Of a DNA stretch of 64,000 nucleotides, positions 2,634 to 62,775 are shown one piece after another. The first letter of the stretch is position 1, and each line of letters begins with the position of its first letter. Under the pieces are notes generated by a model that was given only the letters and a program-made list of their open reading frames with translations, was not told the origin of the DNA and did not search any database. Location of the stretch: contig NIVC01002252.1 of NCBI GenBank assembly GCA_002269645.1, positions 62,001-126,000 of the forward strand. Reading direction: 5' to 3'. A program made the position numbers and the translations under genes. The stretch comes from Macrostomum lignano (taxonomy: Eukaryota).

Positions 2634-4300
2634 ACCGGCAGCATTTGCTTCTTGCTACTTTAACAATACTTTTACCATTGTAAGTACCACTCAAAGAAAT
2701 AACCAAATCAAGCTTATATATGCAAGCGAAACAAGCATACTTGTCCTCATCATGCTTTTTATATTGCATCATTATTTTAGAGTCGAGTCAGCCAACCACT
2801 ACTGCGTGAACGGACAAACCCTAAGCATTGAACTGGACGATTTCTACCACCGAGACGAGACAATAATTCCTCAGGTTCTTGACGAGCCGAGGCACAAACT
2901 GATGAAGCCAAAGGACTGCAGGTGGGAGGTCCTACTGACATCCTCAAATCCAGACCTGCAGTTTGTCCTCGAAGGATTGCACAGCAATGGTAGAAGCAGA
3001 GAGATCAAAGACAAATTCGACAGTAAAAATGAAAGCGCCAGTGTTGTTATGGACTCGAGAACGCGTATTGTTGCAGGCATGTTTCAGGTGCAGCCACTGA
3101 ATAAGAGGTGAGTGCGTGAGACGCAAGAAATAAAATTTTGATCCTGATAAAAAAATTAACTGAAGTGATTCATTTATTTTAACTCTTTCAATTTCAGCAA
3201 GCACTTCTTTCTCACAGCAAGTTGGGATCCTAGAACGCAAAAGCCGCAAGCAGAAAACTTAAGAATATTGTTACCACTGCCTAGATATTGTAGTCGGGAC
3301 ATGCTCAGCTTCAATGGGAGCTGCTATGCTGTGAGCGCAGTTAAACAAAATTTGACCAAGGCCATGTCCAGCATTGGAGGCGATGCTCAGCTGGCCAGCT
3401 TCTCCAGTCTTGCTGAGATCACTGAGTTCGTTGCTGCTAGTAAGTGCGACGTGCATTAATACTCAAAGTTAATTTTAAAATGGTAAAAGCTAATCGGCAT
3501 TTCTACGAGTATAATCAACCAGACTCCCTAAATCCTTGGCTAACTTGCAGATAACAAAAAGCTGCAGGAGTTCCCGTACAGACGGCCCCTGAGCCTGGGC
3601 CAGCCGGTCCGTCTCGGCATGCTTCTCAACCGATCCAGTGCGTCCGTGATGTCTGCGGTCCGGAGTGACAGCGGCTGTCGGCTGGAGTCGGTTTCAGGCA
3701 GCGGTGAATTCGGGTAAAGTTTGGCTCTGCCATTTTTATTAATAAATGCAAATTAATAACTTGAAGAAGTGATTTTTTTAAATTTACTTTTTTTACTTTT
3801 AAATGCATTTTAGTGCTTCTGGTGACACAATAAAAGGTCCGTGCTTGTCTCTTAGGCTTACGAAGTCGAATAGAGGGGTGGTTGAGTTCAGCAACTGCAG
3901 CAGCCGGATGCTTTCGCTGCTGAGCTTCCCGGAGACTGCGCGCTCCGTGCCGAGCTCAGCGCACTGCAGCGGCAGCGAGATGGCAAATCTGATTGAGCAG
4001 CTGGCGAGCCGTCTATACAAAAATTCGTCAAGTCCAGTTCCTAATGAGGCTGCTACTCCGCCGTGGTGGGCTTTCCGCAGTTTCTCTTTTTTCTGGGTCG
4101 CTATCACCTTGTCGAGCTTAGCATTGGCAGTAGCTGTTTCGGTCTGGCGGAACTGCCGACAGCAGTCGCTGACGAAGTCAATTGACGCCGTGGAATCTGA
4201 CAAGTACTCTGACGAGTCACTAATAAATAGTGAAGAAGCTGAGCAACAGACGGTCACTCTTGCATCTGTAAACAACTCCGTGGACATGCGGATCAAATAG
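2634..4300 (+). CDS. CUB-like/CTLD-like type I membrane protein, array copy 2 (exons 2634-2689, 2781-3107, 3198-3439, 3551-3713, 3814-4300; ~424 aa)
   Basis: Same five-exon structure and phases as copy 1, with identical exon 2 (327 nt) and exon 4 (163 nt) lengths. Signal MHLYRQHLLLATLTILLPL; NHYC..CRWEV; TM FSFFWVAITLSSLALAVAVSVW. Confidence 0.85.
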
Positions 4301-5406: not shown

Positions 5407-7234
5407 ATGGCGTCGCGTTATCTTTCCCTTGTTGCCATTGCTCTGGTTTTGTCTAAGTAAGTTAAAACCTAACTGCGTTAAAAATGTTTGCTTTGATAAA
5501 TATATTTCATTACCAGTAACAAAATTACTCGTACTGTGTCCAGGTACCACTGCATCACTAAGGAGATTGAGCTAAACGACGACAAGAGAGAGTTAATAAT
5601 CAGTGTAGATTTGAGAAACCACAGACCACAGAGTTGGGAGGTGAGATTGAGCTCTAGAAGCTCCAATCAACAGGTACTGCTTGAAGGAACTGACCTCACT
5701 GACAGCGCTTATGCTGTCAGCTATTCGCTGGGAACCGACTCAAGAATAGCGACTAGTGGACTATTTCACATCTTTGCTCTCCAACAGGATTAAGTTTTGG
5801 CATAACTTTATTTAGTATACATCGATTATACCGCAGACAATGTGATTCTGTATATGCAGTATTTGACGTCAACTATTCCAGACTGAAACTGCGCATAGAG
5901 GCAAAGCTGATGCAAAGCGGCAAATGGCAAAGTTCGACCATCTTGAGACTTCAGCTGATAAACCCTGAAAAGTGCGCCGCTGACATGCTCAGTTATCGAG
6001 GCTGGTGCTATGTTGACAGTTCAGTACCGCAGAATATTACAGAAGCGATGTTGAGCATTAGAGGCAATGCTCAGCTGGCCAGCTTTTCCAGCCTGAATGA
6101 GATGCAAGAGCTCATCCGTGCTAGTGAGTTTTTAAAATACACTAATCATATATCTAAGGGCTACGAGCTACTAATACCCTGCTCATTTTCTTACAGACAA
6201 CAAGCCACTATTAACTCCTCCGTTCAAGCGACAAATCGACCTTAAGCAAGCAGCTCGTATCGGCATGTTCCGAGGCGATTCCAAGGCGCCAATAATGTCT
6301 CTAATCAATGGTGGCAGCCACTGCGAATTGCAGCCAGTTCAGCAGTACAAGGATCTCATGTGAGCATTCAATTGACGTGAAAACGTGAAGATTTTCGGCA
6401 TTACCTTTTTAACTTTTATTTCTTCTTTTTAGTGTAAACAATAAAACAAATGGTATATATTGGTCTATACGGGAGGTAACATCTGATGGCGCTGAGATGG
6501 AACTGAATGATTGCAACAGTCCAATGCCATCACTAATAAGTTTCCCACAGACAGCCAATTCTGAATCGCTGCATTTCTCCGACTGTCATAGCGACAGCAT
6601 TATTCACCTTGTTACCGAACTGGTCGGTTCTTTTGCGAACAACAGATCAACGTTGCTCACAGGCGGCACCATTCCAACCAACTATGATGATAGAAATGGC
6701 AATGGAAGTGCTCAATGGGCAAGCGGCGCTATTGGTAACTCTACGGCGGAATATAGATCGGAGAAAAATACTCTAGGATTATTGGGAACTAGCATCTTAA
6801 CTGTCATTTCTTTACTTGCACTTATTTTTGCTGTCGTCTATTGCTTTCGCAACCATTTTTGTACAAGGACACATGTTGCGTCTACTGAGAGGGAGCTGGA
6901 ATCAACGCATGATTTAAGACAGAGTGAACGAATGGAAGTTGCCCATAGGCAAAACTCCGCCCAAGATGTAGTCTCATTGGAACCGAACTCCGCCCAAGAT
7001 TTAGTCGCTTCGGAACGGAACTCCGCCCAAGATGCAGTCGCTTCGGAACGGAACTCCGCCCAAGATGCAGTCGCTTCGGAACGGAACTCCGCCCAAGATG
7101 CAGTCGCTTCGGAACGGAACTCCGCCCAAGATGTAGTCGCTTCGGAACGGAATTCCGACAAAGATTCAGTTACTTCAGAGCAGAAGAATTTCCCATTTAT
7201 TATAAACTCGAATATGCATGATGCATTGTGCTAA
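5407..7234 (+). CDS. Divergent array copy 3 (exons 5407-5456, ~5517-5789, 5882-6123, 6197-6359, 6433-7234); intron 2 donor appears mutated, so possibly a pseudogene or a truncated secreted form
   Basis: Signal MASRYLSLVAIALVLS; exons 3 and 4 have the family lengths (242 and 163 nt); TM LGLLGTSILTVISLLALIFAVVYCF. At the expected phase-2 donor the sequence is GA|TTAAGT instead of GA|GTAAGT, and read-through meets TAA at 5791. Confidence 0.7.
6950..7170 (+). repeat. 33-bp coding minisatellite (NSAQDAVASER, ~6 units) in the cytoplasmic tail of copy 3
   Basis: Direct repeats of aactccgcccaagatgcagtcgcttcggaacgg, in frame with the exon 5 ORF. Confidence 0.9.
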
Positions 7235-8343: not shown

Positions 8344-11300
8344 ATGTTCGATTATTTAAAAAAATTATCAGCAGTCCTTCTTCATGACAACCCTTTGACA
8401 TCATATATACTGCTGATCTTACTAGTGGCTTTCTTCACCCAGCTGTGAGTGATATTTGATACATATATTAAGGTCGAATGTATAGAGTAAGTGGGGTTGT
8501 AGCCTAGTGGTTAGAGCGTCGGACTCACGACTAAACGGTCGGGGGTTCGATTCTCGCTCCACTCGGAACAATTTGTGTCGCTTGAACAAGACACTTAACT
8601 CTAAATTGCTTTAGTTCACCCAGCGGTAAAATGGGTGCCAAAATTAGGGTAGGGGGGGGGTAATTGGGGGTGTGTGTGTTAGGAACCCCCCAGTCCTTGC
8701 ACTTTGGGGCTGGGTAGTCATTTATTGTGATTATTATCAATGTTATAATTATATTGCCGTCTAATTATAGTAATCGTGAGTTGGCATATGTACAGTTAGT
8801 ACTCACCTATTCATGTCTGCAGATGCCAGTCAGACAATCACCACTGCAGCCCACTGGGCCAGCACGTTCTACCACTCGACAAAAGAATGAACAAAGACGA
8901 GACTCTGATACCGGAGCTGCAGGATGTTGACAGCGTGAATCGATTCGATTACAACCGCTGCCGATGGAGATTCAAGAAGAACTCGAGACCGCAGACTGGC
9001 GTCCAGTTAGTTGTGCAAGGACTGCCTCTGGCCACTGAATTCAGCCGCTGCGTCAACAAGGCCGAAATTCAAATTAAGAGTTCGTTGGGATGGAAAAAGA
9101 AAATTGAAGCCGGATCCATTCACGTGTTTTCGCTATTTAAGAGGTACTGCTAAATTTTTGCAATCTCGTAGATACTAATGTGTTTTAAAATAGTAAATGT
9201 CATATAAGTGGTGTGAAAATCAAATATAAATTCATATATCTGTTCGCTCACTTCAGACAGTCGTTAGACATCGAAGCGTACTGGAAGGCCAACACTCCAG
9301 CAGTGGACAGATGCGCCATGAAAGTGCGAGTGCTGGTTCCGATTCAACAAGACTGCAGTCCAGACATGCTCGGATTTCGTGGCAACTGCTTCGCCCTGAG
9401 CACACAGAAACAAAATTTAACAGACGCAATGTCCAACATCGGAGGCGATGCTCAGCTGGCCAGCTTCTCCAGCATGGCTGAGGTATCCGAGTTCATCGCG
9501 GCAAGTGAGTAATATGATGATTTAAACAAAATTGCAACAATATAAAATTACTGCAATTTGCATATAATTATTGCTTATGTACACTGGTTTAAGACACAGC
9601 CAGGCAGCACAAGTACCCACACGAGAGGCCTCTGAGCCTGGGTCAACCGGTCCGTCTCGGCATGTTTCTCAACGCATCCGCTGCTGAAGTTCTGTCACTG
9701 GTCAGGAGTGACAGCAGCTGTCAGATGCAGCCTGTTGCGAAGCTGTCCAATTTTTCGTAAGTTTTGTGTTCTCGTAGCGTCATTTCGTTACAAACCAGTT
9801 TGATTGGCCTTCATAAGCACTTTATAAAATCGCTGTAAATTTCAGAGCGACTGGCATAGTGACAGGTCCGTGCTTGACACTGAGGGTGAATAAGTCCGAC
9901 GCAGCGGTGATCGAGTTCGGTGACTGCAGCAGCCCGATGCTGTCGCTGCTGAGCTTCCCGGAGACTGCGCGCTCCGTGCCGAGCTCAGCAGTGCACTGCA
10001 GCGGCAGCGAGCTGGCGACTCTTCTGGATCGGCTTCAGAGTCGCTTTGCGGATGCCGAGTCCAGTCCAGAGTTTTCTGCTCAAGGGAAAAATAATTCGGC
10101 TAGAGAAGGAAATGAGTTATTTTTCCAGAAGAATCAGGATTTTATCTATCCCGCCATTATCGTTGGCGCACTGCTGCTGATTGCTGTCTTTGTGGTGATG
10201 GCGTTCGCGATGAAGCTTCGACGGCGTCGCAAGCTGAAATACCTGCTGAATTACGAACCCCAAGAATCTAAACAGCTACGAGTAGATCACACGCAAATTG
10301 CTGAGCCACCAAAAAATTTTGGGAATTATGCTGATGATTACGTGGCCAGTACGTTGTATCAATTGTCATGAAGTCTTTGTTTCAAGTCCTGTTCTCTGAA
10401 TGAAGTCTTTGTTCAAGCCCGATGTCTCACAATTTCAGAGCGACACCCTCAAGCTGACGACATCACAGCGCCTGCTCTGCACACCTCGTCCAGCATTGAC
10501 AGCCTGGACCTGCTGGCCGCAGCCAAACGGCCGCAGCTTCGTCAGCAAGAGGTCCCCAGCAGTTTGTCATCCACAGCAGACCTTTACTTGGCCGCCAGGC
10601 TGGCCGGGGATGAGAGCAGCGAAGATTTCTCAGATTTGGTGCCGAATTCGTCGGACAGGTTCGGACACTCCGATTCCGAGTCTTTGTCCTCCTCTCTGTT
10701 GGACTCAGCTGTTGGTGGCGCCTCTGGAGAGGTGAGTTGGTTTCTGGCTTCATCTGCGAGTCTGTTTGCCACTCTGTCTCACTCTAAACCTCTGCCTACC
10801 TGTCTATCTCACCCTTTATTTCACTGTCTACCTCTCTGTCTCATACTATACCTCAACTTCTACTTTTCTATCTCACCCTGTTTCCTTGTCTACCTGTATT
10901 TCATCTTGCGCACCTGTCTACATATACCTCTCTAATCTATGTGTTAAGCTGCTGATGAAAAGATTTGACCCACACGTTTATTTATAAATCCTGCTGGAAA
11001 AAGACGACAGCTCGCAGCACTTTAACTACGCGTTCCCTGTCTGATGAATAACCTTTATTAGTACCTCTGAATTAGTTTTAGATAAGGTATATTTATTTAC
11101 GAGCTACAAATTTTATGTTAATGCTGTTAGCTAGATTAGCAATCCAGTTCGTATAATTATTTCCCTTAATCCCTTGCATTTCGCACCTGCAGCCCATTAG
11201 CAATAGTCAATCGGCATCCAACGTTAGCCGCACCAAACAAACGGAGCAGCAGCAACGGAATGAGAAGCCTGATGACTCACGAGAGGATCGGAGCGAGCTG

Positions 11301-11519
11301 CCCCAAGCTAACAACACCAAATATTTGCGGCGCCTTTACCGCCAAAAAATCGATCAATCTGACGCCCGGCATCCTCAGACACCAAAGATCGCGGCTGCGG
11401 TTCGGACATGCAGCGTCCGTTTCGACAACCGAAACTCGAATTTCGAGAAGACCCAGCTGACAGCGGCGAGATCGAAGGTCAGCGACTGGATCGGGGAGAA
11501 CTGCCTCCGGAAGGAATGA
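8344..11519 (+). CDS. Array copy 4 (exons 8344-8444, 8823-9143, 9257-9504, 9594-9756, 9846-10371 short form ~452 aa; or 9846-10348, 10439-10731, 11193-11519 long form ~651 aa)
   Basis: Phases match the family; hydrophobic leader YILLILLVAFFTQL; TM FIYPAIIVGALLLIAVFVVMAFAM followed by KLRRRRK. Two further open exons downstream are phase-compatible (A|gtacgt..tttcag|AG; GAG|gtgagt..ctgcag|CCC). Confidence 0.8.
8492..8750 (+). mobile_element. tRNA-derived SINE with CORE-like central domain, in intron 1 of copy 4
   Basis: A box TAGCCTAGTGG and B box GGTTCGATTC; then tgtgtcgcttgaacaagacacttaactct...gtaaaatggg, resembling the CORE/MIR consensus; ends in an (att)-rich tail. Confidence 0.7.
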
Positions 11520-12797
11520 AAAAACATTTGCGAGCTGTGTTTAGGAACTGACGGCTGATTGTGGGACCAGGAATCGAGTTTGGTCCTCTGTAGCCAAGAA
11601 ATGGACTTCTAGATCTATAGATTGTATTTAGTATATTGGATGGGCTGTGATAATTATATGTATTCATATCTCGTCTAATTTATTTTAAATGTAAAATATG
11701 GCCCAAAACCTCTAAAGATGGTGTCTGGACTGGAATTGTTCCCAGAGGGAAGTCGTCAAAGGGATTTTTTGCTAAAACTCTGATCATGGCTTCGTAACGT
11801 TTTGGTAGGAACCAAGTCAACCTCAAGCCGGCTAGAATGACTGAACAGGGGGTACCCAATGCAGGGATTCGATAAAAACAGGCTTTCGCATGAACCGAAG
11901 ACACGCTTACACAAGCTTAACCCGTGTACATTGAAACTGATCTGACTACGTCACCTATGCTATTCAACAGACTGGGACATTCAGCCAGTTTTCCTCCTCC
12001 GTTCACGCGTTTGACATTGAGACAGTTGCCCTATAATTGAATAAATAAAAAATACCTTAATTTTTTCATTAACTCGTTAAACTTCTCGCGGTTAAGTTCT
12101 TTATAGCAATACTTTAATAATTGCAATCAAAGCTCGTATCGGTAACTGTCCAAATTTATCCATTATTGCAGAAACTTATAAATCGTTCGTCACTCGTTCA
12201 GGTGTACCCGAAATGATTTGTGGTAGATACTCGTAGTTGAAGATGTTCTGCTAAAATCTTGCATAAGTTTATGAGCAGTTTGAAGTCGAAAACATACGTT
12301 AGATTGCTAGAATATACTAGTCTGTATTGTTCTGAGACACAGTTTGACCTTGTTTACAGATTTTGCAGAAATTTTAGTCGGTAGCTACTGAAGCAGCATC
12401 TCAAAAAAGAGAACTTGCTCTGAACAGTTGACACGTACGTGCTCTCAAACTATAGTACGAGCATAGCTAGATCCCACTGACAATAACGACAATAACGAAA
12501 CTCTTGGGTTCTGTGTGAGCCGTCTAAAAAAAGTCATGAGGCTCGAGTTTTTGTTGTGCACTAGCAACCGGCGCCCCCCCCCCCGCTGGGTAGCCAACTA
12601 AAACTGAATCATGTTTTTGAATAATCTACAGGTAGCTTCTGATCTTTCAGTCTTGACAGCTCAGAAATTCCCTTCGTAAGCCTTGACATCTCAGCAATTC
12701 TCACCAAGAGTCACAGCAGTAATATAAGTTACCCCCCCCCCCGGGGAGCCTTGATATCTCAGAAATTCCCCTCGTAAGCTTTGCAGCAGCTGCACGT

Positions 12798-12960
12798 TTA
12801 GCACCGGCTGTGAGCAGTACGACTCGGCGCGGCGATATATTGTCCATTGGTGACTCCCTCGTCGCCGATCTTAAAGGCGGCGAGCAGCAGGCCAGCGTGC
12901 GCCACGTCTACTTGCTGCTTCAGCGAGTCTGTCAGCGTCCAGGTCTCAGCGTTGTAAAGC
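12798..12960 (-). mobile_element. Fragment of a non-LTR retrotransposon (RTE-like clade), region C-terminal to the RT domain
   Basis: LYNAETWTLTDSLKQQVDVAHAGLLLAAF matches the LLYxxETWTL motif typical of RTE-clade ORFs; short and degenerate. Confidence 0.65.
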
Positions 12961-13427
12961 CATAGACCCAAGCACCAAACTGTCAGAGCAGAGATTTCCA
13001 GGTCACCGCTGCACCTCAGCAACTCCGTGGCCGAGCTGGAGGATCTCGGCCTTCAGAGGTGCCTGATCACAGCGGATCGCTTCTCCGCTTCCAGCAACTC
13101 CTGGTCCAGGTCACCATTCCCATGGTCTCTCCTTCCGCCCTGGTGTCGCCGCTCGCCGTCCTCGTGTCGTCGATCGAACGCTACCTCGGTGAGTTCTTCG
13201 TTGTTTCGTAAACCGCCGACTCTGAATCCTCCATGGAGCCCTGAGCCCTGCGCCTGAGATTTTGTCAGTCTCTCTTGCAACGCAAGCTTGTCGCCAAAGC
13301 AGAATACATTCGATGTCCTTCGATGCTAAAAATTACGAGCTAAATAATACATTTACTCCCAGCTCTTGTCGCGACTCTTCAATACCCTTCATTTTCTAGT
13401 CGACGTATTTGTACTACTCTTCTCAAA

Positions 13428-13570
13428 GTCCAGTCGGTCAATCACTACTGCGTGAACGGGCAAACCTAAAGAATTAAAATGGATGACATCTATCATCGAG
13501 ACGCGATAATGAGGTTCATCAGGTCCAGGACGAGCCGATCAGGCACAAGCTGCACAAACCGTTAAACCGC
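13428..13570 (+). pseudogene. Relic exon 2 of the CUB-CTLD family (copy 2-like)
   Basis: VQSVNHYCVNGQT*RIKMDDIYHRD aligns to copy 2 ESANHYCVNGQTLSIELDDFYHRD, with an in-frame TAA and a frameshift; no downstream exons. Confidence 0.75.
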
Positions 13571-14072
13571 CGCCCTTGATACAGACAACACCGCCTACCC
13601 AATACAGCCTGATAAAGGCCACTGACAGTGCCAGTAGCTCTTGGGTTCAGGTCGCTGACCCTGTTCTTAAAACTGCATCTGACCTTTGACACTCCTGACA
13701 CCGCCAACCCTGACACTGCCGATCCCCATCTTCAGAAAATTGGCTGAATCCCTAAAATGTCTGTTGTTTGTTAAAGAGATTAGTTTTCGTCAGAATCACA
13801 CACCCACAACAATTTATTTTAGTCCGCAAACTTGGAACCAAAAAAACTGCACATATGAGAGTCCCGTTTACACGGTAGAATTCGCAGTAGAGTACACTGT
13901 ACGCTCGTTATTGAGTAACTAATGCTATTTTTAGACCTAACGTCATGCTTAAAGACGATTAGCTACTTAATGCATTTTTATATGAATCACAACCTTCATG
14001 TCTAATATCATGCGAGATAGATCGAAAACTTTCTTGATACTTCAAAGTAAATTTGTGTTTTCCGGATAAATT

Positions 14073-14495
14073 ATGGTAAGCCCCACTAATATTGTCAACC
14101 AATTGTTAGCAAAAATATTCAAAGAAATTCAAACATTTGAAATGCAAATATAAATTCGTCTGAGTTTTATGCCTCACAAAATAAACAGGCAAATACGTAA
14201 GAAATTCCCGTTAAATTTTATTTCAAAACTGTCGCTTTCGTTCGCTGTGTTCCTCTTGACGTTCTGTCCGAAAGTGAATCAACAAACTTTGCAATAAAGT
14301 AAATTTCGTAATCGTACTATATATCATGTTTTTATTACCAAATCTAATTGCTCGCATCGATCATAAAAAACTAAACTTGCAACAATTAATTTTTGTAAGG
14401 TCTACGGAGGACAACCATTACTGTCTCCATGGAGATCGTCAGTCACAGTGCAAATACACGATTATTATAACCGAGACGCAACTATCGTTCCCATC
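14073..14495 (+). pseudogene. 5' relic of a copy 5-like paralog (ATG micro-exon, decayed signal exon, start of exon 2)
   Basis: ATG|gtaagc at 14073; signal exon with damaged sites (tttt-atttca; cc|gaaagt); DNHYCLHGD then a 2-nt frameshift before SVTVQIHDYYNRDATIVP. Colinear with 16577-16995. Confidence 0.7.
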
Positions 14496-15450: not shown

Positions 15451-16079
15451 GATACAGACTACTGACACTGCCCGTGCCTACCTCTCTTGATACAGGCTAT
15501 TGACACTGCCCCTAATTCCTAAATTCACGCTCCTGATCCTGCTCTTAAACATGGAGCTAAAAAACTGTTTTCATTCAACTCTCGTTAACATGGAACTAAA
15601 AAACTGCTCATAGCAGAGTCCCTTTTTACAAGGTAGGAGCTAGTATTCGCAGTTGAGTACACTCACCTCAGTACATTCATTGTTGTAAAAAATACTATTT
15701 TTAGACTGCTGTCAGAGCCATGAAAGACGATTGGTTAATGTTTAAACATACATTTGTATATATGACACCCTTTTAAACAGCTTGCGAGAAAATTTCAAAA
15801 CCAGCTCGATGATATTTCAAAAATTGTGCTCTTCGGATTCAAAAGGAATCATGGTAAGCTGGATTATCAATATATTGTAAACCTACTATTAGCAAAAATA
15901 TTCAAAGAAATCCGAACAATTTAAAAGCAAACATAATGATCTGCTATACAATGTTATACAATGATCTTGTATAACAGAACAAAATCCTTTCTTACGCGGT
16001 AGTATTTGCAGTTGGTACACTCACCTCTGTACGCTCGTGCATTGTAGTCAATAGCTACATAATATATATACGAGCTATA

Positions 16080-16474: not shown

Positions 16475-16576
16475 TATATATAGCTTGTATCAAACGCCTT
16501 TTAAACACCTTGTGAAAAGTTTTAAAACCAGCTTGATTATATTAAAAAACTGTGCTCTTTGTATTTAAATGGAATA

Positions 16577-18581
16577 ATGGTAAGCTACATTGTCAGTGTC
16601 AATATTTAAACATATTATAAGTAAAATTATTGAAAATCTGAGCCATAGAAACACAAATATACAACTGATGTCTAACATCCATCTGAATAAAATCTCCAAG
16701 ACTAAACTGCAACGAAAATTCCCTAAAATTTTAGATTTCAGCACATCTGTGGCTTTTATTGACTGTAGTCTTCATGACGTTTTATCCGTAAGTGAATTTT
16801 CATGCAACTTATAAAATCTTTTAAACTAACACAGTTTTATTTCCTTTTCGAGTACAAAAAACGAAATAAAAACAAAGCTTGCAACAAATAATTTTGTAAC
16901 CCAGTTCCGCCGAAGAAAACCACTACTGCCTCCATGGAGAGTCGGTCACAGTTCAAATAGACGACTATTATAACCGAGACGAGACCATCGTTCCCATGAT
17001 TCTGGGCGAGTCAACTAAAGGCCAGCGTAAGCCCAAGCAATGCAGGTGGGACATCAGACTGAAGACAGCGAAACCAGGCATGCAACTTGTGATTGCAGCG
17101 GTGCCCAGCAAGAAAGACCGATCGACTGCTGCCGATGGGAAAGCCAGAATGTCGGTCGATTACTTGAACCGCAATTTCATCATCGTTACGACCGGCATGT
17201 TTCAAGTTCTACCAGCGACAGAGCAGTGAGTACAGCTCAAGTTGATGCTGTTTTTCACGTTGAATCGTTGAATTCGATGAATCAAAGAAAACTTGGTGAC
17301 TTCATTTCAGTCAGCGCTTCACAGTCGACCTCAGCTGGGATCCAGGGATGCAGAAACCGGGCTTCGACAACCTGAGGATATTGCTGCCGATTCCGGGACA
17401 GTGCGGCCGAGACATGCTGTGGTTCAGTGGCAGCTGCTATGCTGTCAGTGCAGTGCGGCAGAGTATGGCTGACGCTACGGATAGCGTTGGAGGCGATGCT
17501 CAGCTGGCCAGCTTCTCCAGCATGGCTGAGATCAGCGAGTTCATCGCTGCCAGTGAGTTATCAGTAGTTGTGTTTGTAGCTCGTAACAGAACTGAACTCA
17601 ATTAGGCAACTAAAACACTCGCGTCTCTTGCATTGCAGACACGGCAAGGCAGAATGAGTTTCCCTACCGAAGTCCTCTGAGCCTGCGCCAGCCAGTCCGT
17701 CTCGGCATGTTTCTGAACGCATCCGCTGCCACCGTGCTGACCGCCGTCAGAGGTGACAGCGGCTGCGTGCTGAAGTCTGAAAAGCTCGCAAACATTACGT
17801 AAGCTGTTGAATTTGTACACAGCTTGAACTCATCAAAAGACATCAGAAGACATCAAACTATTTTCTTGTACAGTGGACAATATTTCTTCACTCTTTCAAT
17901 TCGATTCATTTCAAGTCCGACGTGCTTTTCAGAGCGACTGGCCGAGGGAAAGGTCCGTGCCTCTCTCTCAGAGTGACTGAGTCCGATAAAGCAGTGGTCG
18001 AGTTCGGCGACTGCGGCAGCCCGATGCTGTCGCTGCTGAGCTTCCCGGAGACTGCGCGCTCCGTGCCGAGCTCAGCAGCGCACTGCAAGGGCAGCGAGCT
18101 GGCGACTCTTCTGGATCGGCTTCAGAGTCGCTTTGCGGATGCCGAGTCCAGTCTAGCGTTTTCTGCTCAAGGGAAAAATAATTCGGCTAGAGAAGGAAAT
18201 GAGTCATTTTTCCAGAAAAATCAGGCTTTTATCTATCCTGCCATTATCGTTAGTGCACTGTTGCTGATTGCTGTCTTTGTGCTGCTGGCAGTCGCGATGA
18301 AGCGTCGACGGCGACAGCGTTCTCAGCCGAACGCATCAAATTCTGAGTCTGTTGTCCTTCCTCTATCTGGTGTCCACCGTTCAGCCTCCACTCGCTCCGA
18401 TCGCCACGAGAAGGGCACAAAGGGAAGCAACTCGGTCGGCGCATCGTTAGAAGATGATCACTGGAAGGTCGCTACGGAAAAACTACTTTCCAATGGTAAT
18501 CAACCTCTGTTAGATGGTCCGCCAAGTTTAACTCGTGAATCGCAGACTCTGGGTGTCATTGATTTGAACCTTGCTGTATGA
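16577..18581 (+). CDS. Array copy 5 (exons ..16577-16579 ATG only, 16735-16787, 16905-17225, 17311-17552, 17639-17798, 17933-18581; ~475 aa); chimeric
   Basis: M|ISAHLWLLLTVVFMTFYP|SAEENHYC; phases consistent; TM FIYPAIIVSALLLIAVFVLLAVAM followed by KRRRRQR. Confidence 0.85.
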
Positions 18582-21186: not shown

Positions 21187-23253
21187 CTTTGGCGCAGGTC
21201 CTCTGTTGTTTTCTTCCTGTGTATTTGCCTTTATGTGCCGTATTCGAGTCAAGTGGCAAGTTTTCCCTTAGCTGTGTGAGGCATGGTTGTTCAATAATGT
21301 TGCGAGCTCGAATTTCGCAACTGAGCATGATCGTGCTCAGGATTAGGATCATGTTTCAGGTGTAAAAAATGGAACGTACTCAACGCATTGGCTTCGTATA
21401 TGCATTCCAAAAATTTCGCAGCGAATCACTATTGCATACGGGACCATACGTCAAATCGACTAATTGATGAGTTCTACAACCGGGACGAGTTGCTCATACC
21501 ACGCGTTCTTGGCACGTCCTCTCAGGGCCAGTTCCAAATAAAATGCAGGTGGGACATCAGATTGAAGACAGAGAAGCCCGGCATGCAACTCGTGATTGCA
21601 GCGATGCCCAACAAGAACAACCGATCAACAACTACAGATGAGGAGGTCAAAATGTCGGTCGACTTCATAAACAGCAATTTCGTCAGCGTTACGACCGGCA
21701 TGTTTCAAGTTCTACCAGCGGCAGAGCAGTGAGTACAGCTCAAGCTGATGCTGATTGTCTCGTTAGCGTTCCATGAATCAAGGAAAACTTGGCGATTTCA
21801 TTTTAAGTCGGCGCTTCACCGTCGACCTCAACTGGGATGCACGAGTGCAGAAACGGAGCTCCGACAACCTGAGGATATTGCTGCCGATTCAGGGACAGTG
21901 CGGCCGAGACATGCTGTGGTTCAGTGGCAGCTGCTATGCTGTCAGTGCAGTGCGGCAGAGTATGGCAGACGCTACGGATAGCGTTGGAGGCGATGCTCAG
22001 CTGGCCAGCTTCTCCAGCATGGCTGAGATCAGCGAGTTCATCGCTGCTAGTGAGTCATTATGAGCTGTCTTCGTTGGACTCGCTTTTAAGTACGTACGAG
22101 CCGCCTCAAGCACACAAATCCCATCTCATTGAATTGCAGACACGGAAAGGCAGAAAGAGTTTCCCTACCGACGGCCTCTGAGTCTGAAACAGCCGGTTCG
22201 CCTCGTCATGTTCCACAATGCATCAGCTGCTGCCGTGTTGTCCGCGGTCAGGAGTGACAGCGGCTGCCTTCTGCAGCTTGTGTCGAATTCGTTTAACTTT
22301 TCGTAAGGCTTTGAGTCTGTTGGAATTTTGTTTTGGTTGCGTTTTAATTTCACTTCTGTTTGTCTCCATCTTGTGTGCATGACAAAGTGTGGAACCAGTC
22401 CGAAAATTGGTGGCCCTCGGCGCTCGCTGATAGGCTGGACCTATTCGTTGTCACCTTCGATTGTTTGTGTTCGAATTTCTCTTGGCCCTTTATCACTTAA
22501 GCCGTCCAAACACGCTGTTGATTTATCCAAATCCAAATCCGATATCCAAATCTTTTACACAGTCAGAATTTCGGTTTGGATTCGGGATTTACGTCAGGGA
22601 CATCATGCTGGCTCATGCAGAATCTTGATCTAGTATGAGCCAAATAAAGCGCATGAATTGCAGCACGATATTAAAATATTTCCAGACTGACTGGCCGAGA
22701 GAGAGGTCCATGCCTGTCTCTAAGGGTGACTGACGAAGACTCAGCGGTGGTCAAGTTCGTGAACTGCAGCAGCCCGATGCTGTCGCTGCTGAGCTTCCCG
22801 GAGACTGCGCTCTCTGTACCGAGTTCAGCGCACTGCAGCGGCAGCGAGCTCATGAAGCTGGTTCAACTGAAGCTGAGCTACCAAGTCAGCACAACTCTGA
22901 GCCCTAGCCAGATTCATTCTCGGATAACTCGGATAGCGGTTCTCTGTTCCGTTGGCTTGGGTGTCCCCTTGCTGATTGGCGTCCTTGTCGGCTTGTCGTG
23001 CGTGCTATACCGGCGACGAAGGAGTTTCGATATCCGAGGAAACAATCCGGAAGAAGACCAACAACAAGACCCTGCAAGGGCCGTTTCAGCAATCTCAGAT
23101 AACAATCCGGTAAGACAGCGAAACCCAATAATGTCCGGGTTCAGACGTCTGCCTTCATTCCGTCAAAGTCGCCGAGAAAGAGGGGACCGTGGAATTGCAT
23201 TAGCGGAACAAAATGGAAACGCAGCGCTTGACCCCAACGCTAATAAACCATAA
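21187..23253 (+). CDS. Array copy 6 (5' exons uncertain; exon 2 ends 21728; then 21808-22049, 22140-22302, 22686-23253)
   Basis: NHYC..KCRWDIRLK; exons of 242 and 163 nt; TM IAVLCSVGLGVPLLIGVLVGLSCVLY followed by RRRR. A candidate signal exon LWRRSSVVFFLCICLYVP lies at 21187-21239, but the start codon is unresolved. Confidence 0.75.
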
Positions 23254-24650
23254 TCGTCTTTGCGGCATTCAGATATTTAATATTCGAATTGAATAAGGAT
23301 ATTAAACATGAATAAAGCTATAATAATATAACTGATCGCACTTACTGAAGCTAATATATAAATTAACCTTCCCAATTTATACATTTTGGGTGATTACTGC
23401 ATATCGTTGAACTGTTTACTTAATATGCTTGAATTGCCAAAGCTTGTGATAGACAAAGTCAATGTTTAAAACTCGATCGTACATGTATTGAATATTTTTA
23501 TGGTGCAACACTTCGACACAAATGTTTACAATGATTTTAAAAATAACATTTACAGCTATTTACTTTCTGCACCACGATGCTTTGGAGTTGCTTAATGAGC
23601 GTGCGAGTATGCAGTTTATTTTTTGGGTAAATGTTTAGTTCTAAATACATTTAAAAGTATTCGCTAATGCCCTCTGACCCCTCTCTTCTTGTTTTTATAT
23701 TTATACTGCGTATAGCTATATATTACATATCTAACATTTCTAATGTAAGCATGCAGTTTTTTATTTTGTATTAGCTTTTGCTGAAAGCAATACCTCCTAG
23801 TTTTCCGAAACTTGCCGCCCGTTGTCTTGAAGAGCTTATAACTGGCTGACAATGTCTACAAATTATGACTTTTTCGCTTTTTTAATTGATTTTACTCTAG
23901 CCTTTACAGACTTCTATTCAGATCATTACTGATTCTTGGCAGTGTATATTTTTGTTTTTGAGATTTTAGCTGACAGTTATTACCGGTTATTAAGCTTATT
24001 ATTCGAATTAAGAATTCAAATTACTGATGCGCTTTAATTTTCAGTTATGTATTTTGAGGTCTTACTTTTATAAACCAAATAAACCTCACTGGAGTAAATG
24101 TGTATCACTACATAAGCTACACATTAGCTAACATTATAGTACATTAAATCTGGAGTCAAATTTTTACATTTGCATGAAAGCTTTCATGCCAAATTGAACC
24201 CTAGCTACAGATTTTGTACGCGTTTGGCGAACGCTGCTTTGTACAGTACGTGTAGAGTTATTTTTGGACCAGATAAAGGGGAACTTTGATTCAATGCAAG
24301 CGTCCCCCGTGTTCAGGTGTACATTGCAGTGTACATGTTTCTAAAAATAGAAAGCGAAAACACAAAAATATACTTGACTCTAAATGTTCCGTATTAGAAT
24401 GTTTTAATGCGTCATGATTTAATGCAAAGTTCCTACCTTGATTGACTGAAATATCTTAGCTAAAAAGGCTGCAAATTCAAAGAATCTTTCAGGAATCTAC
24501 TCGGTAGTTATCAAAAGAAAAAAAAGAAATTTTGCTTCTAACTAACGCTTTCCTGGTGAGCAACCTATTTGAAGCAGATTTTCATGCTTCATTGGCACTA
24601 GCTGCGAGGAAAATATCAATATAATCCAGCCTATATGTTTTGCATTTCAG

Positions 24651-26259
24651 ATGCGTGTTCTACCGTGGCATCTACTAATACTCGAACTTACATGTCCTCG
24701 AAGGAGTGTCCAGCAGCGAAGGAACTGACAGTTCAGCCTCGGCTAACCAAACAGAGATACCGCTAGAGATTATGGGAATCGATGCTCATGCTTACCAGCA
24801 TGTTGACGCTGGCACGTTGCGTGTGATCTCGCTGAATAAAATGTAAGAATTTCCTTTGGTAAAACACAGATGGGCGCGTTTTCACCCGGTTCTTGCATTA
24901 TTACCAAATTTGCTGTTACCTTCTCGTCACGCCCTAACAGGGAGTTCTTCTCCGTCAGAGCGAACTATAATCCTAGGAAGCAAAAAATGCAGCTGAAAAA
25001 GCTAAGGATTGCTATGCCACTTCCCACAGTCTGCAGTCGAGGCATGCTCGGCTTCAACGGCAGCTGCTACGCTTTGAGTGCGGTCAGACAGAATTTAACA
25101 GCCGCAATGTCCAGCATCAGAGGCGATGCTCAGCTGGCCAGCTTCTCCAGCATGTCTGAGATCAGCGAGTTCATCGCTGCCAGTGAGTTGAGGTGATTGC
25201 TATACTCAGCAACAGCTAAGCCTCCTCTGTGGAGCAGTGTGATAATGTTGAGCATTAGTGATTTATCTGTCACAAGAGTTCATTGATCAGGATCTTAGCC
25301 ATGGGAAGGGAGAGGGGGTCCGCGCACGTCCTTCACACGTCCTTGACTTACGTGTCACCTTAAGTACAGCTCAACCAAGTGCAATCAACTCTGACTTAGC
25401 TTAATCCAATATAAAACTTAATGAAAATTATATTTATATCCATTCGGATATTCCAGACAAAGCAAATCTGAATGAGTTCCCCTACAGGCGGCCCCTGAGC
25501 CTGGGCCAGCCGGTCCGTCTCGGCATGTTTATCAACGCAGCCGATGTCCAAGTGCTGTCCTTAGTCAGAACTGATACCGGCTGTCAGCTGCTACCTGTAG
25601 CTGACTTTGATGAATTCCAGTGAGATTCAAACTCAAGTAAGGTTTATTGATGTATTCAATTGTAATAAAGTACTATTGGGTGACTTTTCAGAGTGACTGG
25701 CAGAGTGACAGGTCCGTGCCTGTCTCTGAGAGTGGCCGCATCAAGCAGAGCGGTGGTCGAGTTCAGCAACTGCAGCAGCCCGATGCTGTCGCTGCTGAGC
25801 TTCCCGGAGACTCCCAGTTCATTGCTGTGCTTTGAGCACTGCAACATTACCGACACTGTGACCAATGAACCGATCCAGTTTGAGATGTCGACTCCTCAGT
25901 ACGCATCTGAGTACGCGATGAATGCTCTGAATTGGAGCACCAGCGCTAATGACACAGTGGCATATTTTGATGGCGACTCAGCGCTTGGTGTTGACTTTCG
26001 ATACCTTATCTTCATCCTAATAGGAGTGAGCTGCATTAGCACGACTTTATGGCTACTATCTAAATTGTGTCAGTCAGCAGCAAACCAGTCTGACTATTTT
26101 CTAACAGTCAGAGCATTAACCTGTAGTGCCAAAGTTTTATTATTTAATAAAAGTACAATCAAGGTGACAATATTCAGATTTTGTGTTAGAATTCCATTTA
26201 TTAGTGCATATTTTAATTTTGATTTTTATGTATCAAGCAAACAGTTTGTATTGGCATAA
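24651..26259 (+). pseudogene. Array copy 7, 5'-degenerate (24651-24842, 24941-25182, 25457-25619, 25692-..); probable pseudogene or N-terminally truncated gene
   Basis: Exons 3-5 are intact, with family lengths and TM FRYLIFILIGVSCISTTLWLL. The CUB exon lacks the NHYC half and has TAA at 24676 in the frame of the downstream donor; no convincing signal exon was found. Confidence 0.6.
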
Positions 26260-27001: not shown

Positions 27002-42582
<15,581 letters not shown>

Positions 42583-46591: not shown

Positions 46592-55050
<8,459 letters not shown>

Positions 55051-59249: not shown

Positions 59250-62200
59250 AGTCCTGACCCACTGATGACTGATTGACAACAATGGGTTAAAGGTAGTCAT
59301 GACCCACTGATGACTGATTAACAACAATGGGTTAAAGGTAGTCATGACCCACTGATGACTGATTGACAACAATGGGTTAAAGGTAGTCCTGACCCACTGA
59401 TGACTGATTAACAACAATGGGTTAAAGGTAGTCCTGACCCACTGATGACTGATTAACAACAATGGGTTAAAGGTAGTCATGACCCACTGATGACTGATTG
59501 ACAACAATGGGTTAAAGGTAGTCATGACCCACTGATGACTGATTGATAACAATGGGTTACAGGTATAGTCATGACCCACTGATGACTGATTGACAACAAT
59601 GGGTTACAGGTATAGTCATGACCCACTGATGACTGATTGACAACAATGGGTTACAGGTAGTCCTGACTCACTGATGACTGATTAACAACAATGGGTTACA
59701 GGTAGTCCTGACCCACTGATGACTGATTGACAACAATGGGTGAAAGGTAGTCATGACCCACTGATGACTGATTGACAACAATGGGTGAAAGGTAGTCATG
59801 ACCCACTGATGACTGATTGATAACAATGGGTTAAAGGTAGTCCTGACTCACTGATGACTGATTAACAACAATGGGTTAAAGGTAGTCATGACCCACTGAT
59901 GACTGATTGACAACAATGGGTTACAGGTATAGTCATGACCCACTGATGACTGATTGACAACAATGGGTTAAAGGTAGTCCTGACTCACTGATGACTGATT
60001 GACAACAATGGGTTACAGGTATAGTCATGACCCACTGATGACTGATTGACAACAATGGGTTAAAGGTAGTCATGACCCACTGATGACTGATTGACAACAA
60101 TGGGTGAAAGGTAGTCATGACCCACTGATGACTGATTGACAACAATGGGTTACAGGTAGTCATGACCCACTGATGACTGATTGATAACAATGGGTTAAAG
60201 GTAGTCCTGACTCACTGATGACTGATTAACAACAATGGGTTACAGGTAGTCCTGACCCACTGATGACTGATTGACAACAATGGGTTACAGGTATAGTCAT
60301 GACCCACTGATGACTGATTGACAACAATGGGTTAAAGGTAGTCCTGACCCACTGATGACTGATTGACAACAATGGGTTACAGGTAGTCCTGACCCACTGA
60401 TGACTGATTGACAACAATGGGTTAAAGGTAGTCCTGACCCACTGATGACTGATTGACAACAATGGGTTACAGGTAGTCATGACCCACTGATGACTGATTG
60501 ACAACAATGGGTTAAAGGTAGTCCTGACTCACTGATGACTGATTGACAACAATGGGTTAAAGGTAGTCCTGACTCACTGATGACTGATTGACAACAATGG
60601 GTTAAAGGTAGTCATGACCCACTGATGACTGATTGACAACAATGGGTTACAGGTATAGTCATGACCCACTGATGACTGATTGACAACAATGGGTTAAAGG
60701 TAGTCATGACCCACTGATGACTGATTGACAACAATGGGTTACAGGTATAGTCATGACCCACTGATGACTGATTGACAACAATGGGTTAAAGGTAGTCCTG
60801 ACCCACTGATGACTGATTGACAACAATGGGTTACAGGTAGTCCTGACCCACTGATGACTGATTGACAACAATGGGTTAAAGGTAGTCCTGACCCACTGAT
60901 GACTGATTGACAACAATGGGTTACAGGTATAGTCATGACCCACTGATGACTGATTGACAACAATGGGTTAAAGGTAGTCATGACCCACTGATGACTGATT
61001 GACAACAATGGGTTAAAGGTAGTCCTGACCCACTGATGACTGATTGACAACAATGGGTTAAAGGTAGTCCTGACTCACTGATGACTGATTGACAACAATG
61101 GGTTAAAGGTAGTCCTGACTCACTGATGACTGATTGACAACAATGGGTTAAAGGTAGTCCTGACTCACTGATGACTGATTGACAACAATGGGTTACAGGT
61201 AGTCATGACCCACTGATGACTGATTGATAACAATGGGTTACAGGTATAGTCATGACCCACTGATGACTGATTGACAACAATGGGTTACAGGTATAGTCAT
61301 GACCCACTGATGACTGATTGACAACAATGGGTTACAGGTAGTCCTGACTCACTGATGACTGATTAACAACAATGGGTTAAAGGTAGTCATGACCCACTGA
61401 TGACTGATTGACAACAATGGGTTACAGGTATAGTCATGACCCACTGATGACTGATTGACAACAATGGGTTACAGGTATAGTCATGACCCACTGATGACTG
61501 ATTGACAACAATGGGTTACAGGTAGTCCTGACCCACTGATGACTGATTGAAAACAATGGGTGAAAGGTAGTCATGACCCACTGATGACTGATTGACAACA
61601 ATGGGTTACAGGTAGTCCTGACCCACTGATGACTGATTGACAACAATGGGTGAAAGGTAGTCCTGACCCACTGATGACTGATTGACAACAATGGGTTACA
61701 GGTAGTCCTGACTCACTGATGACTGATTAACAACAATGGGTTAAAGGTAGTCATGACCCACTGATGACTGATTGACAACAATGGGTTACAGGTATAGTCA
61801 TGACCCACTGATGACTGATTGACAACAATGGGTTAAAGGTAGTCCTGACCCACTGATGACTGATTGACAACAATGGGTTACAGGTAGTCCTGACCCACTG
61901 ATGACTGATTGACAACAATGGGTTAAAGGTAGTCCTGACCCACTGATGACTGATTGACAACAATGGGTTACAGGTAGTCATGACCCACTGATGACTGATT
62001 GACAACAATGGGTTAAAGGTAGTCCTGACTCACTGATGACTGATTGACAACAATGGGTTAAAGGTAGTCCTGACTCACTGATGACTGATTGACAACAATG
62101 GGTTAAAGGTAGTCATGACCCACTGATGACTGATTGATAACAATGGGTTACAGGTATAGTCATGACCCACTGATGACTGATTGACAACAATGGGTTACAG

Positions 62201-62775
62201 GTATAGTCATGACCCACTGATGACTGATTGACAACAATGGGTTACAGGTAGTCCTGACTCACTGATGACTGATTAACAACAATGGGTTAAAGGTAGTCAT
62301 GACCCACTGATGACTGATTGACAACAATGGGTTACAGGTATAGTCATGACCCACTGATGACTGATTGACAACAATGGGTTACAGGTATAGTCATGACCCA
62401 CTGATGACTGATTGACAACAATGGGTTACAGGTATAGTCATGACCCACTGATGACTGATTGACAACAATGGGTTACAGGTAGTCCTGACCCACTGATGAC
62501 TGATTGACAACAATGGGTGAAAGGTAGTCATGACCCACTGATGACTGATTGACAACAATGGGTTACAGGTAGTCCTGACCCACTGATGACTGATTGACAA
62601 CAATGGGTGAAAGGTAGTCCTGACCCACTGATGACTGATTGACAACAATGGGTTACAGGTAGTCCTGACCCACTGATGACTGATTGACAACAATGGGTTA
62701 CAGGTAGTCCTGACCCACTGATGACTGATTGACAACAATGGGTTACAGGTAGTCCTGACCCACTGATGACTGATT
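59250..62775. repeat. 45/47-bp minisatellite, ~3.5 kb
   Basis: Unit ggtagtcatgacccactgatgactgattgacaacaatgggttaaa, with a +ta variant. Confidence 0.97.

Follow-up and report, generated by a model that had tools for sequence, protein, structure and literature searches.

Short shared patches between neighbouring genes in a receptor-like tandem array of Macrostomum lignano: a probable case of interlocus gene conversion

How does one gene in a tandem array come to resemble one neighbour in its middle and a different neighbour near its 3' end? The question is raised by a 64,000 nucleotide stretch of the Macrostomum lignano genome (assembly GCA_002269645.1, contig NIVC01002252.1, forward strand positions 62,001 to 126,000), here called the window, in which seven same-strand tandem paralogs are found within the first 26 kb. 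These genes are referred to as copies 1 to 7 in their order on the + strand, and all positions given are those of the window. Copy 5, which extends from its ATG to its stop codon at 16577-18581, shares one block of sequence with copy 6 and another with copy 4. Both blocks are interpreted, with good confidence, as products of non-allelic (interlocus) gene conversion in tandem paralogs, in which short internal patches would have been copied non-reciprocally between same-strand genes 4.5 and 7.9 kb apart.

Two blocks with different partners

The block common to copies 5 and 6 begins midway through exon 2 and takes in the rest of that exon, intron 2, and the whole of exon 3 (17039-17560, + strand; partner 21542-22057). 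Alignment of 17041-17560 with 21544-22057 has 460 matching positions, 53 mismatched ones, and 8 columns with gaps, an identity of 88.3%. The first-pass annotation of this locus had described the block as nearly identical between the two genes; the block exists, and this wording is overstated for most of it. Its older layer is ~85% identical, with 158 of 185 positions (85%) the same in the exon 2 part. Intron 2, which had also been reported as included in the similarity, is identical at 66 of 78 aligned positions, plus one 7-8 bp indel. Exon 3 is identical at 229 of 242 positions and its last 190 bp at 186 of 190 (98%), in agreement with the ~200 bp with about three differences that had been noticed there. 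This last part has the appearance of a recent conversion tract (17364-17560, + strand; partner ~21861-22057), with 3-4 differences and an end at the exon 3 donor site. The edges of the block are sharp, with 54% identity upstream of 17040 and 48% in intron 3, which is unalignable between the two genes (17553-17638 versus 22050-22139).

The proportion of synonymous differences (pS, Nei-Gojobori) between copies 5 and 6 follows the same outline. It is 0.81 in the 5' half of exon 2, 0.23 in the 3' half, 0.16 in the 5' part of exon 3, 0.049 in the 3' part of exon 3, and 0.42 in exon 4, the last being equal to background. In other pairs of copies it is 0.43-0.63 for the 3' part of exon 3 and 0.5-0.9 for the 3' half of exon 2 and the 5' part of exon 3. 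The possibility that copies 5 and 6 are young duplicates of a whole gene was rejected, as neither intron 3 nor intron 4 can be aligned, the pS of exon 4 is at the background level, and the exon 4 sequences of genes of the copy 5 kind (5-type) and of the copy 6 kind (6-type) are each conserved across loci.

The block common to copies 4 and 5 is within exon 5. Comparison of 17995-18315 with 9908-10228 finds 300 of 321 positions identical (93.5%), with no indels, and the sharing covers only the middle ~320 bp of this 649 bp exon. The 62 bp before it are 74% identical, and from 18316 onward, after the RRRR stop-transfer sequence, identity falls to ~33%, which is random. Because the first ~80 bp (17996-18076) are an island common to all of the copies, what copies 4 and 5 alone have in common is ~18070-18313 (+ strand; partner ~9983-10226; maximal extent from 17990), containing an extra codon, the stalk, the transmembrane helix, and RRRR. 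With the extra codon copy 4 reads SSAVHC and copy 5 SSAAHC, where copies 1, 2, and 6 have SSAHC, and no other copy in the window has it. At the level of the family it was rejected as a marker exclusive to these two, since a 6-type gene elsewhere (P0001) has NSTAHC. In the stalk and transmembrane segment the pS between copies 4 and 5 is 0.11 versus 0.6-0.9 for other pairs, and the segment is unalignable among the remaining copies. Earlier observations on this block, namely its near identity including the inserted codon, the divergence of the two tails directly after RRRR, and the lack of sharing between copies 4 and 6 (62% identity in exon 3 and 52% in the exon 5 block), are all borne out.

A GENECONV-like permutation analysis over 666 polymorphic sites, with 2000 permutations, returned a fragment score of 124 for copies 5 and 6 and one of 118 for copies 4 and 5, where the permuted maximum was 31 (global p<5e-4). 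Neighbour-joining trees of separate segments group copies 5 and 6 with 100% bootstrap support in the 3' half of exon 2 and in exon 3, and copies 4 and 5 with 99% in the stalk and transmembrane segment. Trees of the 5' half of exon 2, of exon 4, and of the 5' part of exon 5 give no support for either grouping. The per-exon trees proposed as a check in the first-pass annotation are thus incongruent, with 99-100% bootstrap support for conflicting groupings. Its broader claim, that recombination between paralogs has left segment-specific mosaic relationships, is supported by these conflicting trees and by the synonymous and intron similarity.

Gene conversion and the alternatives to it

Four boundaries delimit the two blocks. 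Those at 17041, ~18070, and 18313 are inside exons, and only that at 17552-17560 coincides with an exon end. Two internal boundaries per block argue against a hybrid made by a single unequal crossover, and three of four boundaries inside exons argue against intron-mediated exon shuffling. Shuffling of exons or domains by way of introns was rejected, the breakpoints being mostly intra-exonic and not at domain borders. The block shared with copy 6 opens halfway through the CUB-like domain and closes in the first third of the lectin-like domain. It had been proposed that ectodomains, transmembrane segments, and tails are recombined as modules. This holds for the stalk, transmembrane helix, and RRRR, which travelled together between genes whose ectodomains and tails differ, but not for the block of copies 5 and 6, which cuts through domains.

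Under conversion, the patches would be ~200, 240-320, and 520 bp in length, each flanked on both sides by old, saturated divergence. They would fall into at least three age layers by pS, at ~0.05 for the exon 3 tract, ~0.11 for the stalk and transmembrane segment, and ~0.2 for the 3' half of exon 2 with the 5' part of exon 3. Patch ends would lie where the paralogs retain enough nucleotide identity to pair, which may be the CRW motif at 17041 and the two conserved islands described below. In addition, the copy 5 lineage would have acquired a different 5' end at 17041.

A single unequal crossover joining a gene like copy 6 to one like copy 4 could be imagined in a same-strand tandem array, especially as the gene debris and the inverted fragment between copies 4 and 5 indicate past rearrangement. 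Such a hybrid should have one breakpoint and flanks that follow its two parents. Instead the number of internal boundaries is four, and copy 5 resembles neither partner in exon 4, at the beginning of exon 5, in the tail, or ahead of 17041 at its 5' end, so that this origin is extremely improbable. Even less credible is the view that exchange never took place and that the blocks merely mark where constraint on the protein is strongest. Two islands are indeed conserved in all copies, but the similarity of the blocks is specific to pairs of genes. It extends to synonymous sites, with pS of 0.05-0.23 inside the blocks versus 0.4-0.9 for other pairs in the matching segments, and to intron 2, and therefore cannot be put down to protein constraint. 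The stalk and transmembrane segment would on this view be highly constrained, and yet it is unalignable among the other copies.

An error of assembly, in which one paralog or homeolog was exchanged for another within copy 5, deserves consideration in a genome of this type. The DV1 genome of M. lignano is rich in repeats and in part duplicated, and duplicated blocks of >=95% identity account for 180 Mb of it (PMC5730564). However, the blocks are 85-98% identical to their partners (2-15% divergence), rather than 100%. The protein P0003 (UniProt A0A1I8I910) reproduces copy 5 exactly from exon 2 to ADAESSL, spanning both shared blocks. 5-type genes at other loci have an equal composite structure (P0009, P0001, and P0002), and the gene order 4'-5'-6'(-7') recurs in the fused models P0009 and P0001. 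As the source of the composite structure of copy 5, such a switch is very unlikely. At the P0009 locus the copy 4 counterpart carries a stalk and transmembrane segment of identical type. As a separate observation, this locus is ~98% identical to the window in the copy 4 part and ~83-90% in the copy 5 part (P0009 and P0007 versus 9937-13189 and 16900-17800), making the divergence between the two loci very uneven.

Interlocus gene conversion is known in tandem receptor or lectin gene clusters, including KIR, the C-type-lectin-like receptors Ly49/NKG2, the MHC, and RHD/RHCE and glycophorin hybrids. As in these clusters, the M. lignano array has short, probably non-reciprocal patches between nearby same-strand paralogs, phylogenies that differ from segment to segment, similarity that runs into introns and synonymous sites, and chimeric receptors in which ectodomain, transmembrane segment, and tail are re-paired. 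It differs in belonging to an orphan flatworm lineage and in that only protein sequences from other loci tell donor from recipient. The process would be ordinary, known gene conversion; it is the family that is uncharacterised. No published account of this receptor family, or of gene conversion in M. lignano, was found by literature search.

Breakpoints and relative ages such as these show exchange between neighbouring genes diversifying a lineage-specific family of surface receptors in a model organism for regeneration. There are practical consequences as well. Per-gene trees and orthology calls would be misleading, and RNA interference or in situ probes and knock-out guides would cross-react, unless placed outside the blocks and islands.

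Direction of exchange and the conserved islands

The pattern in the window is symmetric and by itself cannot separate donor from recipient, but genes at other loci can be used to polarise the exchanges. The 6-type genes of P0009 and P0001 have their own exon 3 states, GKCGRDMLQFNG, MTDATDS, FISAN, and EVSWDPRRQAPS. Copy 6 of the window has 5-type states in exon 3, including FSG, while its exon 4, stalk and transmembrane segment, and tail remain 6-type. The FSG state is derived in comparison with the FNG or FRG of all other members and is present only in copy 5, copy 6, and the 5-type counterpart in P0009. Copy 6 thus looks like a 6-type gene into which patches of 5-type sequence have been set, with copy 5 as the probable donor of the exon 3 tract.

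For the stalk and transmembrane segment, copy 4 is probably the recipient, from a 5-type gene. In every 5-type gene the shared segment is joined to a 5-type tail. A pseudogene of the copy 4 type, found in the interval separating copies 4 and 5, resembles copy 4 most both in exon 2 (89%) and in the 5' part of exon 5 and diverges from everything after the HC motif. It is without the extra codon and without the shared stalk, suggesting that copy 4 acquired the segment. Both inferences of direction, drawn from proteins or from a pseudogene, are only moderately secure.

Copy 5 had been presented in the first-pass annotation as the assembled gene, with a middle like that of copy 6 and an exon 5 like that of copy 4 brought together as domain modules. 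Beyond the symmetry of the pattern within the window, this has in its favour a star-like tree of the stalk and transmembrane segment and the fact that the copy 5 lineage is itself recombinant at 17041, where the pS of the 5' half of exon 2 is 0.81. This half-exon is shared only with the P0009 counterpart (39 of 41 amino acids) and is saturated against all other 5- and 6-type genes, and P0004 has 5-type sequence downstream and a 6-type 5' half. Opposed to it are the differing exon 3 of 6-type genes at two other loci and the 5-type residues in copy 6 of the window, the constant association of the stalk and transmembrane segment with the 5-type tail in 5-type genes together with its absence from the copy 4-type pseudogene, and block edges that cut through the CUB-like and lectin-like domains. 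The other-locus proteins and the pseudogene probably indicate the reverse polarity, and a recipient role for copy 5 is considered improbable. The probable polarity of the events is in this respect a correction of the earlier description.

Several points weigh against the account of conversion, with copy 5 or a 5-type gene as donor, that is preferred here. Intron 3 is unalignable between copies 5 and 6, yet the first ~45 bp of exon 4 are like copy 6 at 40 of 45 positions, a combination for which one continuous old tract would not account. P0003 could stem from the assembly that gave the window and may therefore not be independent. The direction from copy 5 to copy 6 is read from protein sequences only, and the subfamily of 5- and 6-type genes is reticulate across many loci, P0011, P0015, and P0016 being further patchworks, which makes the orthology of the '6-type' genes uncertain. 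Protein distances in the stalk and transmembrane segment come near to a star when copy 4 is compared with the 5-type proteins. The pseudogene is the one sequence that polarises that event, and its own 3' part could have been overwritten. The domain assignments used above come from a medium-confidence model of the paralog P0014, and Pfam gives no domain in copy 5 or in ten relatives.

Two short stretches are highly conserved at the nucleotide level, synonymous sites included, across the array. Island 1 (17490-17545, + strand), encoding GGDAQLASFSSMAEISEF, is found in all copies, including the divergent copy 3, with 92-98% nucleotide identity, and is at the 3' end of the block of copies 5 and 6. 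Counterparts are present, for example, at 1317-1367, 3374-3421, 6061-6092, 9441-9499, and 25120-25182. Island 2 (17996-18076, + strand), encoding VVEFGDCxSPMLSLLSFPETARSVPSS, is found in all copies and the pseudogene with 92.5-97% nucleotide identity and is at the 5' end of the block of copies 4 and 5. Examples of its counterparts are at 1765-1844, 3884-3960, 9911-10000, 14946-14877, 22763-22829, and 25755-25812. Where pairs of paralogs have the same amino acid, the fraction of identical codons is 0.91-0.94 in island 1 and 0.88-0.94 in island 2, compared to 40-65% elsewhere, and the exon sequence around the islands is near saturation. The GC content at third codon positions is 0.82-0.86 in island 2 of all copies and is not clearly raised in the pair-specific blocks.

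Island 1 is where the block of copies 5 and 6 ends, and the block of copies 4 and 5 starts within island 2. Read plainly, this would mean that paralogs which have diverged can begin or resolve a conversion only where identity persists, and the islands would then be sites of pairing or resolution. Another plain reading would have the islands kept uniform by frequent short conversions or by constraint at the nucleotide level. The islands encode the most conserved peptide motifs, so protein constraint contributes. Their position at the patch ends is a testable hint about what restricts conversion when paralogs are highly diverged.

The var genes of Plasmodium are known for mosaic recombination that is anchored on conserved blocks of homology. 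The array resembles that system in having highly diverged paralogs with a few short, strongly conserved nucleotide stretches in common and exchange boundaries at those stretches. It is unlike it in that no more than a few events are seen, with no sign of high-frequency or programmed recombination or of antigenic variation. It is doubtful that the islands are maintained recombination joints, at which parts of the ectodomain are re-paired with stalk and transmembrane segments and signalling tails. If they were, this would be a germline diversification system comparable to the var homology blocks.

The copy 5 gene, its family, and the surrounding sequence

The coding exons of copy 5, from frame translations and GT-AG boundaries, are at 16735-16788 (signal peptide), 16905-17225, 17311-17552, 17639-17798, and 17933-18581 on the + strand. 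The ATG is at 16577-79, the stop codon is at 18579-81, all introns are GT-AG, and the open reading frame of 475 amino acids is intact. The intron phases are conserved in copies 1, 2, 4, and 6. The order of the predicted product is signal peptide, ectodomain, stalk, transmembrane helix, RRRR, and tail.

The signal peptide exon has no in-frame ATG and a TAG directly upstream. The starting methionine must come either from a 3 nt 'exon', ATG|GT, at 16577-79 or from the AUG of a spliced leader trans-spliced at 16734/16735; a 3'-terminal AUG is present on all reported flatworm spliced leaders (PMC12582326). An alternative in-frame acceptor is present at 17972, 39 nt inside exon 5 in comparison with 17933, and is used by the models P0003, P0009, and P0001. 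Its use skips 13 amino acids (ATGRGKGPCLSLR) that include a cysteine conserved in the family, and P0002 and P0004 include these amino acids. The difference is either alternative splicing or an annotation error.

Searches with the spliced copy 5 product and with a family profile against 5.8 billion sequences gave 8 and 19 matches, all from M. lignano. A further search gave 45 matches among 1.84 billion representatives, and the 10 of these that were looked up are all M. lignano. This is an uncharacterised, Macrostomum-restricted family of receptor-like orphan type I membrane proteins.

No Pfam domain is found in copy 5 or in ten relatives, and the CUB and Lectin_C models do not match. The AlphaFold2 model of P0014 has a mean predicted local distance difference test score (pLDDT) of 65 and a predicted template modelling score (pTM) of 0.60. 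In Foldseek searches its N-terminal half matches the CUB domains of neuropilin, Neto2, meteorin, C1r, and spermadhesin weakly (E 3e-4 to 6e-3). Its C-terminal half matches the C-type-lectin-like domains (CTLDs) of rhodocetin, BDCA2, Reg3a, and convulxin (E 3e-3 to 7e-3; template modelling score by target 0.5-0.6). All nine matches from a profile search of the PDB are CTLDs, each below threshold (E 0.4-1.1). UniProt labels several relatives 'CUB domain-containing'; other automatic names in UniProt (PilZ, vitellogenin, VASt, and others) contradict one another and were set aside. This weak but consistent evidence suggests, at fold level only, a CUB-like plus CTLD-like type I membrane protein.

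Many clec genes of Caenorhabditis elegans have an architecture of CUB plus C-type-lectin-like domain. The M. lignano proteins are similar in their predicted order of a CUB-like beta-sandwich followed by a CTLD-like fold and in forming a large, fast-evolving, lineage-specific tandem family. They are different in that the Pfam CUB and Lectin_C models fail to match and in being membrane-anchored with variable cytoplasmic tails.

The other members of the array are all on the + strand. Copy 1 begins at 729 and copy 2 at 2781, and the divergent copy 3 is at ~5900-6700. Copy 4 can be followed from exon 2 onward, with a multi-exon tail (8823 to ~11519), and P0007 matches it exactly apart from an intron. 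Copy 6 is present from exon 2 to its stop codon (21422-23253), and P0013 corresponds to its exons 2-3. Copy 7 (from 24941) has exons 3-5 intact. Upstream of it, at 24300-24950, there is an exon 2 region that matches the 7-type sequence of P0001 and has an in-frame stop codon in the frame read. Copy 7 may be either defective at its 5' end or incompletely modelled.

The debris between copies 4 and 5 includes a 5' fragment like copy 2 (13392-13541, + strand) and a frameshifted relic of the 5' end of a copy 5-type exon 2 (14366-14495, + strand) that is 81% identical to 16868-16997. The copy 4-type pseudogene is inverted (15330-14818, - strand), with exon 2 fused to exon 5, exons 3-4 deleted, and stop codons. 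Upstream segments are also duplicated in this interval, 13829-14153 being similar to 15587-15936 and 15769-15935 to 16497-16661.

A scan of the whole window with Rfam found no RNA families, so the two islands do not correspond to any RNA element known there. From 27 to 64 kb the window is mostly satellite arrays, and tandem satellites make up more than half of it, as fits the repeat-rich M. lignano genome (PMC5730564). The arrays include a 39 bp unit in 228 copies with 99% identity (31859-40729), a 22 bp array (52543-54571), and a 45/364 bp array (59250-62775). GATA, GACA, and ACT microsatellites are also present in 27300-64000. Wedged between satellite arrays, at 40975-40799 on the - strand, is a stretch of 59 amino acids with 98% identity to an internal region of P0006 (A0A1I8JHF2), which belongs to the family as a distant member and has additional sequence at its C-terminus.

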